Below, piece by piece: positions 43,240 through 43,294 of a DNA stretch of 64,000 nt. Each line of letters opens with the position of its first letter. The stretch's first letter is position 1. This stretch comes from Mobula hypostoma (taxonomy: Eukaryota). The DNA lies in contig NC_086107.1 of NCBI RefSeq assembly GCF_963921235.1, positions 95,356,001 through 95,420,000 on the forward strand, read 5' to 3'. The position numbers and the translations under genes are program-made. The notes under the pieces are model-generated. The model had not been told where the DNA came from. It worked only from the letters and a program-made list of their open reading frames with translations, and did no database searches.

Positions 43240-43294
43240 CGGGACCTAAGAGATAGCCAGCACTGTTCAGTGTCCAACCTCTTCCTTCTTTTGG
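43240..43294 (-). CDS. GAL/GALP: Galanin-family precursor, exon 3 (55 nt): [18 protein letters not shown]
   Basis: Perfect galanin(1-13) core; cttacttttcag| acceptor and CCG|gtaagt donor, phase 0-1; same size as GAL exon 3. Confidence 0.97.

Follow-up and report, generated by a model that had tools for sequence, protein, structure and literature searches.

The window analysed here is a 64,000-nucleotide stretch of Mobula hypostoma DNA (assembly GCF_963921235.1, contig NC_086107.1, positions 95,356,001 to 95,420,000 of the forward strand). It carries a galanin-like precursor gene on the minus strand and, head-to-head with it, exons of a DKKL1/DKK3-like (soggy-domain) gene on the plus strand. 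Splicing of the galanin-like gene joins five coding exons, with AG/GT at every border, into a CDS for 114 aa. The predicted protein matches the RefSeq entry XP_062919377.1 ('galanin peptides-like [Mobula hypostoma]') at every residue (100%), and from ATG to stop the gene covers 6061 nt, as does the annotated gene on GCA_963921235.1. The ray galanin-like gene is already annotated and is a known paralogue, not canonical GAL.

All features of the galanin-like gene lie on the minus strand. Coding exon 2 (43829-43909) holds the ATG and the signal peptide MWRGLSLTRTSLILCGLTMGCFGFILM, is bordered by the acceptor ctccccccag and the donor gtaattat, and aligns with the shark gene. Coding exon 3 (43294-43240, 55 nt) encodes PKEGR, peptide residues 1-13 and the first base, G, of codon 14, and coding exon 4 (41473-41571) encodes the rest of the peptide from Asp14, Gly-Lys-Arg and the start of the C-terminal flanking peptide DIAGARSNSDGADH. 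Coding exon 5 (40640-40690; RDTIQPLVEMLSYSRLA) was located via the sequence of the Hemitrygon homologue; another candidate for this exon, at 39745-39696 (KDQTIGSVTGSLV…), was rejected, given that the Hemitrygon protein places the real exon at 40690-40640. The coding part of the last exon (37849-37907) consists of GILALNNLDLALTEQTQDA and the stop codon. From the sequence only, a 3' UTR with two AATAAA signals (37774-37769 and 37748-37743) is predicted at 37743-37848, and a putative non-coding exon 1 is placed at 48046-48210, with a TATATATA stretch just upstream and the donor caag/gtaaat at 48046/48045 (a slash marks the exon border here and below).

Long low-complexity or tandem repeats occupy 44000-44750 and 41600-42350 (minus strand) and 36500-37100, in introns 1-3 and the downstream flank, and give spurious long ORFs that are Pro/Ser/Thr-rich or built of 'PSVGPSVCYQSLPVL' and 'WTDRCPLHS' units. 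Elsewhere the window is filled with many LINE reverse-transcriptase fragments, among them those at 14035-15236, 51525-52163 and 57718-58987. The region at 24903-30300 (minus strand), downstream of the galanin gene, had been read as peptide-hormone-like, and the ORF listing gave no convincing exon set there. A kisspeptin, spexin or TIP39-type neighbour would be expected if the locus followed the KISS/GAL/SPX tandem model or resembled 19q13.33, but no such motif was found.

A six-frame motif scan of the whole window finds the GWTLN-coding stretch once, in exon 3, whose borders coincide with the interval singled out by the earlier, sequence-only reading. The reverse complement of this exon reads tttcag/CCA AAA GAA GGA AGA GGT TGG ACA CTG AAC AGT GCT GGC TAT CTC TTA GGT CCC G/gtaagt, and exon 4 starts cttcag/AT GCT GCA AAT GGT CAT CGG TTG CTG ATG GAT AGG CCT GGC CTC GCT GGG AAA AGG. 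Gly1 is preceded by Gly-Arg, not by the dibasic Lys-Arg of the galanin family: the codons AAA GAA GGA AGA (43280-43291, minus strand) place Lys-Glu-Gly-Arg at P4-P1, a change from KR to GR in which the P4 Lys is kept. Core residues 1-13 sit on their own small exon, and codon 14 is split after its first base, G/AT, across the intron. As the last base of exon 3 (43240, minus strand), the ray has G where the shark has C, and together with AT at 41571-41570 this G gives GAT (Asp14), not CAT (His14). The peptide frame runs for 29 residues and is followed by Gly-Lys-Arg (GLA-GKR-D), with the amidation and cleavage signal kept. The sequence-only reading of this locus had proposed that the dibasic KR before GWTLN is lost, that the exon 3/4 junction yields Asp14 and that the C-terminal amidation signal is present; all three are borne out, by the exon 3 codons, by the split codon and by the GKR retained in exon 4.

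Two galanin-type genes occur in cartilaginous fishes: canonical GAL, as in Pristis and Pristiophorus, and a GAL2-type gene, the latter with clear counterparts in chimaera, lungfish, frogs, lizards and snakes and with a cDNA-based record in the elephant shark (NP_001279504.1). A maximum-likelihood tree built from 47 proteins places the ray sequence in a 22-member GAL2 clade (SH-aLRT 100), where it groups with Hemitrygon (98) and then with the skate Rhinoraja (94). Mammalian GALP forms its own clade in this tree, on a branch of 2.36 substitutions per site that is too long for its attachment point to be trusted. The GAL2-type gene has been given several names: it is 'galanin peptides-like' in RefSeq, 'GAL2' in PMC4992253 and the 'GALP' of Kim et al. 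2014. As relayed by PMC9174643 and PMC4131245, Kim et al. 2014 used that last name for the coelacanth and Xenopus copy, which they linked to KISS3. PMC4992253 instead took the non-mammalian copy to be a duplicated GAL, because it keeps GMAP and is without synteny to human GALP. Our literature search found no paper on the elasmobranch GAL2-type gene.

The ray gene shares with the GAL2 family the exon plan, the signal/pro-segment signature SLILCGL…CFG…(I/L)MPK and the 13-residue core, followed by -AANGHR-…-GLA-GKR. It differs from the family in having GR for KR/RR before Gly1 and Asp14 for His (Tyr in chimaera), at Leu22, Met24, Arg26 and Pro27, and in a shortened flanking peptide without a Pfam GMAP match. 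By hmmscan, the Pfam Galanin domain (PF01296) scores 50.3 bits against a cut-off of 20.5, with model positions 1-29 on residues 33-61. Pfam GMAP (PF06540) gives no match at E≤1 in the ray or skate proteins and is present in the shark paralogue (36.9 bits) and in shark GAL (65.2 bits); a short remnant is left in the ray, where …LVEMLSYSRLAG… aligns with …LIEFLTYLRLRESG…. Canonical GAL resembles the ray gene in its identical residues 1-13, in its 29 residues with Gly-Lys-Arg amidation, in the codon 14 split at the same phase-1 intron and in a full-length PF01296 match. The two are nevertheless separate paralogues: the chondrichthyan GAL of Pristis and Pristiophorus has the sequence …SHSFGLVLS(A/T)…(V/M)DN… and a GMAP domain, and canonical GAL HAVDNHRSFNDKHGLA differs from the ray at 8 of the 16 residues in positions 14-29. 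The KEKR of GAL, which the sequence-only reading had used as its comparator, is accordingly replaced here by the site ancestral to the GAL2/'galanin peptides-like' paralogue, PKDKR (PKDRR in the skate).

Mammalian GALP, which is a 60-residue non-amidated peptide, was retrieved in its proper form from eutherians only (protein search). It resembles the ray precursor in the 13-residue core, in the absence of a dibasic pair before the core and in the Gly-Arg-Gly at the junction. In contrast to the ray, which has a P4 Lys, it has no basic P4 residue and carries an extra Gly (…H-R/Q-G-R-G-GWTLN), and where the ray has GLA-GKR it is without GKR after galanin-frame residue 29, reading …GPVLHLPQMGDQD…. 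The earlier description of the ray product as a GALP-like peptide does not extend to the C-terminus, given that GLA-GKR is kept at residues 27-32.

The neighbouring gene (exons 53801-53866, 56626-56760 and 62243-62326, plus strand) starts at 53801, 10 kb from the galanin gene, and runs past the window. Its exons encode a signal peptide and an acidic segment, as of an acidic secreted preproprotein. This segment is approximately 85-92% identical over most of the 111-aa model to ray, skate and shark proteins named 'dickkopf-like protein 1' or 'dickkopf-related protein 3-like', and a core of approximately 70 residues, …VVDFDSLPLNYHDEENEEELVGDKIFHKYEKIDKETDDITGDTILSEREVIEEDDD…, is virtually invariant across Chondrichthyes, from chimaera to rays. 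A full HMMER search matched a 364-aa elephant-shark form with Cys-rich domains as well as tetrapod DKKL1 and DKK3; in other species, the annotated forms include a short one (104 aa) and a long, Cys-rich one (364 aa). A tree of DKK3/DKKL1-like proteins did not separate DKKL1 from DKK3 type for the neighbour; the DKKL1-type call is based on the C-terminal …(E/K)L(K/A)…(R/G)P(E/G)(Y/F)(F/Y) tail shared with Sceloporus 'DKKL1' and on linkage.

In Callorhinchus, the galanin-like and DKKL1-type accessions are neighbouring (XP_007909017-20 and XP_007909026-27) and the scaffold length is 4,039,043 for both; the two genes likewise share one scaffold length in Rhincodon, Cetorhinus, Carcharodon, Sceloporus and Liasis. 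In a sea turtle, true DKK3 lies on the same chromosome-sized scaffold as canonical GAL. Human GALP is at 19q13.43 and DKKL1 at 19q13.33, with DKK3 at 11p15.3 and GAL at 11q13.3, and the GAL2/DKKL1 and GAL/DKK3 linkages mirror these human arrangements on 19q13 (GALP, DKKL1) and chromosome 11 (GAL, DKK3). Taken together, the DKKL1-type linkage in fishes and squamates, the DKK3-GAL linkage in the turtle and the human 19q13 map favour assigning the GAL2-type gene to the GALP paralogon; the peptide tree is uninformative on GALP because of its long branch.

The altered cleavage site is rare. Among the 122 GAL and GAL2-type precursors retrieved, the dibasic pair before GWTLN is missing in two, those of Mobula and Hemitrygon (both GR), and the other 120 have KR, or in a few cases RR, directly before GWTLN. 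The site reads PKDKR in sharks (with one PQDKR and one PKR), AKDKR in chimaera, PKDRR in skate, PKDKR in lungfish, frogs and lizards, and PKEGR in Mobula and Hemitrygon. Position 14 is His in the other GAL/GAL2-type orthologues compared, Tyr in chimaera and Asp in the two stingrays, further exceptions being predicted splice isoforms with inserted extra residues. Conservation of GR and Asp14 in other sharks and rays, a point raised by the sequence-only reading, thus holds for Hemitrygon akajei, which shares both, but not for the skate, the sharks and the chimaera, which have KR/RR and His14 or Tyr14. In predicted GAL2-type isoforms of the skate Rhinoraja, a gecko and a python, …GP-PD-… replaces …GP-H-… at the exon 3/4 junction, so that species encoding His14 can also acquire an Asp beside Pro13 through an alternative donor.

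The orthologous exon of the bamboo shark, also 55 nt long, reads CCT AAA GAC AAG AGA GGT TGG … CCA C/gtaagt, and its exon 4 starts AT GCA. Since this exon ends in C and that of the ray in G, the replacement of His14 by Asp amounts to a single C-to-G change in the last base of exon 3. G is the usual donor-consensus base at the end of an exon, and because of this match we infer that the change would be harmless to splicing. Relative to the shark codon, the step from Lys to Gly (AAG to GGA) takes at least two base changes, and the Arg of the skate is a plausible intermediate between the two residues. The KR-to-GR and H14D changes have apparently not been reported in stingrays before.

Judged by the -3/-1 rule and by homology, including GAL's …TFG/LVLSAKEKR (the slash here marking the cut), the signal peptidase would likely cut after Gly23 (…GCFG/FILM) and leave FILMPKEGR at the N-terminus. 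A proprotein convertase would then still be expected to cut after Arg32, K-E-G-R↓G retaining (K/R)-X-X-R in a context with a non-aliphatic P1', a non-aromatic P2 and no Cys nearby. Cleavage at GKR, carboxypeptidase trimming and amidation would give a 29-residue amide with a predicted monoisotopic mass of 3034.56. The cut at GR would probably be less efficient than one at KR, and a FILMPKEGR-extended 38-mer (4106.15) may coexist; the 41-mer resulting from an alternative signal cut has a predicted mass of 4413.25.

Precedents for cleavage at such a site exist. The GHRH, NPFF/NPVF and metorphamide precursors are cut at monobasic Basic-X-Gly-Arg↓ sites, and pro-IGF-1 is cut at K-X-X-R↓. The monobasic rules set out by Devi in 1991 reportedly call for a basic P4 and exclude an aliphatic P1', an aromatic P2 and any Cys nearby, all of which fits the KEGR site. 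The motif behind which PC1, PC2, furin and their relatives cut is (K/R)-Xn-(K/R), in which n is 0, 2, 4 or 6 (PMC8310232). Because KEGR still fits this motif with n=2, we favour the ordinary 29-residue amide as the main product, with moderate confidence. The sequence-only reading was right that the dibasic pair is gone, but to speak of removal of the cleavage site would overstate the case, given that the P4 Lys/P1 Arg convertase motif is kept. In pig prohormones, 34% of RxxR sites are cleaved compared with 71% of xxKR sites (PMC3499383), so a prediction from the motif alone is weak, and at P4 Lys is less favoured than Arg. A mixture of 29-mer and 38-mer products is quite possible. That all other GAL/GAL2 precursors compared keep the pair (see also PMC12749109) suggests that it matters for efficient cleavage.

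With residues 1-13 unchanged, the peptide should still be a galanin-receptor agonist. In the structural literature, His14, Ala15 and Val16 of galanin make no contact with GALR2 (PMC9371267), whereas in GAL1R residues 14-16 are ordered against a hydrophobic ECL2 patch and the Gly1 NH bonds Glu32, a bond found in GAL1R only; truncation to Pro13 lowers activity at GAL1R but not at GAL2R, and the GALP extension is tolerated owing to a flat binding pose (PMC8924211). The whole GAL2-type lineage has Ala16 in place of Val16, and stingray Asp14 adds a negative charge in the same segment. Asp14, Ala15 and Ala16 would lie in a segment important to GALR1-type but not GALR2-type binding, if the human receptors are a guide. 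By this analogy, Ala16, Asp14 and certainly an N-terminal extension are expected to weaken GALR1-type rather than GALR2-type binding, because human GAL1R, not GAL2R, uses the Gly1 NH and residues 14-16.

Two further explanations of the altered site were considered, an error and a decaying gene. An assembly or sequencing error, or an allele private to the sequenced individual, which the sequence-only reading had named as the outcome that would undo its proposal, is excluded by the same PKEGR and Asp14 in the independent assembly of Hemitrygon akajei. The RefSeq protein of Mobula hypostoma is identical to our model, the AAG-to-GGA step needs more than one base change, and we found no point in support of such an artefact, the chance of which we regard as negligible. 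Judged from these two genomes, KR-to-GR and H14D are real, fixed and derived in Myliobatiformes. A second explanation would have the stingray copy drifting to loss of function, with GR, H14D, the changes at residues 22-27 and the lost GMAP as symptoms of relaxed constraint. This would fit the long batoid and stingray stems (0.42 + 0.46 substitutions per site in the maximum-likelihood tree, compared with 0.03-0.1 on shark branches), the failure of Pfam GMAP to be detected in ray and skate, and the low identity of Mobula to its shark orthologues (approximately 53%), whereas the sharks, 80-88% identical among themselves, are approximately 65% identical to lungfish. However, two ray families have an unbroken ORF with every splice site in place, and the GKR amidation signal is still present. 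Mobula (Mobulidae) and Hemitrygon (Dasyatidae), whose lineages separated roughly on the order of 100 million years ago, are identical at 110 of 114 residues (96.5%); residues 10-80 are invariant and the four differences are L5S, R9W, T81A and L105H. Between the ray and the bamboo shark, codons 1-13 show 0 nonsynonymous and 4 synonymous differences and codons 14-29 a pN of 0.20 against a pS of 0.82, values that describe this pair only and are not stingray-specific. The ray gene is intact and, in that comparison, under purifying selection, and we consider drift towards loss of function very improbable. Some relaxed constraint is possible, in view of the long stem branch and of the batoid copies in which GMAP goes undetected. 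The pattern of a burst on the batoid stem followed by renewed conservation argues for a stable derived state and not a decaying gene; GR and Asp14 would have arisen in this burst, along with the remodelling of residues 22-27 and the erosion of the GMAP-like tail.

The more serious alternative to the 29-residue amide is that the GR site is cleaved poorly or not at all and that the main product is an N-extended, amidated 38-mer, or a 41-mer if the signal peptidase cuts after Gly20. A blocked Gly1 together with Asp14 would then shift the peptide towards GALR2-type receptors, and stingrays would have taken independently the step by which mammalian GALP became N-terminally extended. The loss of the pair in exactly two stingrays among the 122 precursors speaks for this, as does eutherian GALP, which with …GRG-GWTLN is an uncleaved extended peptide (PMC9174643) and is the only other part of the family without a dibasic pair, but GALP lacks the convertase motif (P4 is His, Val or Ala, and an extra Gly follows the Arg), whereas the ray has the recognised combination of P4 Lys and P1 Arg. 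Only approximately one-third of RxxR motifs are cleaved in the mammalian prohormone set (PMC3499383), and the flat pose of galanin on the receptor tolerates an N-terminal extension, Gly1 being dispensable for GAL2R (PMC8924211). Mobula and Hemitrygon share FILMPKEGR without a difference, but the pro-segment is equally conserved in sharks upstream of an intact KR, so its conservation is uninformative on retention. The gene probably lies in the GALP paralogon, next to its DKKL1-type neighbour, but the hydrophobic Phe-Ile-Leu-Met N-terminus is unlike the polar APAHRGRG of GALP, and the C-terminal half, with GKR at positions 30-32, is galanin-like and not GALP-like. On balance, a predominant 38-mer is possible but less likely than the 29-mer. 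The N-extended, GALP-like product put forward by the sequence-only reading would be expected if Arg32 stayed uncut, and is the less likely of the two products it had offered. The fuller scenario, in which stingrays independently repeated the GALP-creating step in the same GALP/GAL2 gene lineage through loss of the dibasic site and an amidated, GALR2-biased 38-mer has been frozen by selection for approximately 100 million years, seems to us rather improbable.

The basic picture of the locus is unchanged, in that the gene is an annotated member of a known family. The GAL2-type gene is adjacent to a DKKL1-type gene in cartilaginous fishes and shares a chromosome with one in squamates, and this linkage is further synteny evidence in the dispute over whether GAL2 is GALP (Kim et al. 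2014 versus PMC4992253). Galanin precursors are textbook KR-flanked neuropeptides, and a recent survey describes all vertebrate galanins as flanked by KR (PMC12749109); stingrays are a conserved exception. The stingray GR offers a natural experiment on the weight of the basic P2 residue when the P4 Lys stays, and, if the extended form exists, stingrays would be a living model for how GALP gained its N-terminal extension and receptor bias.
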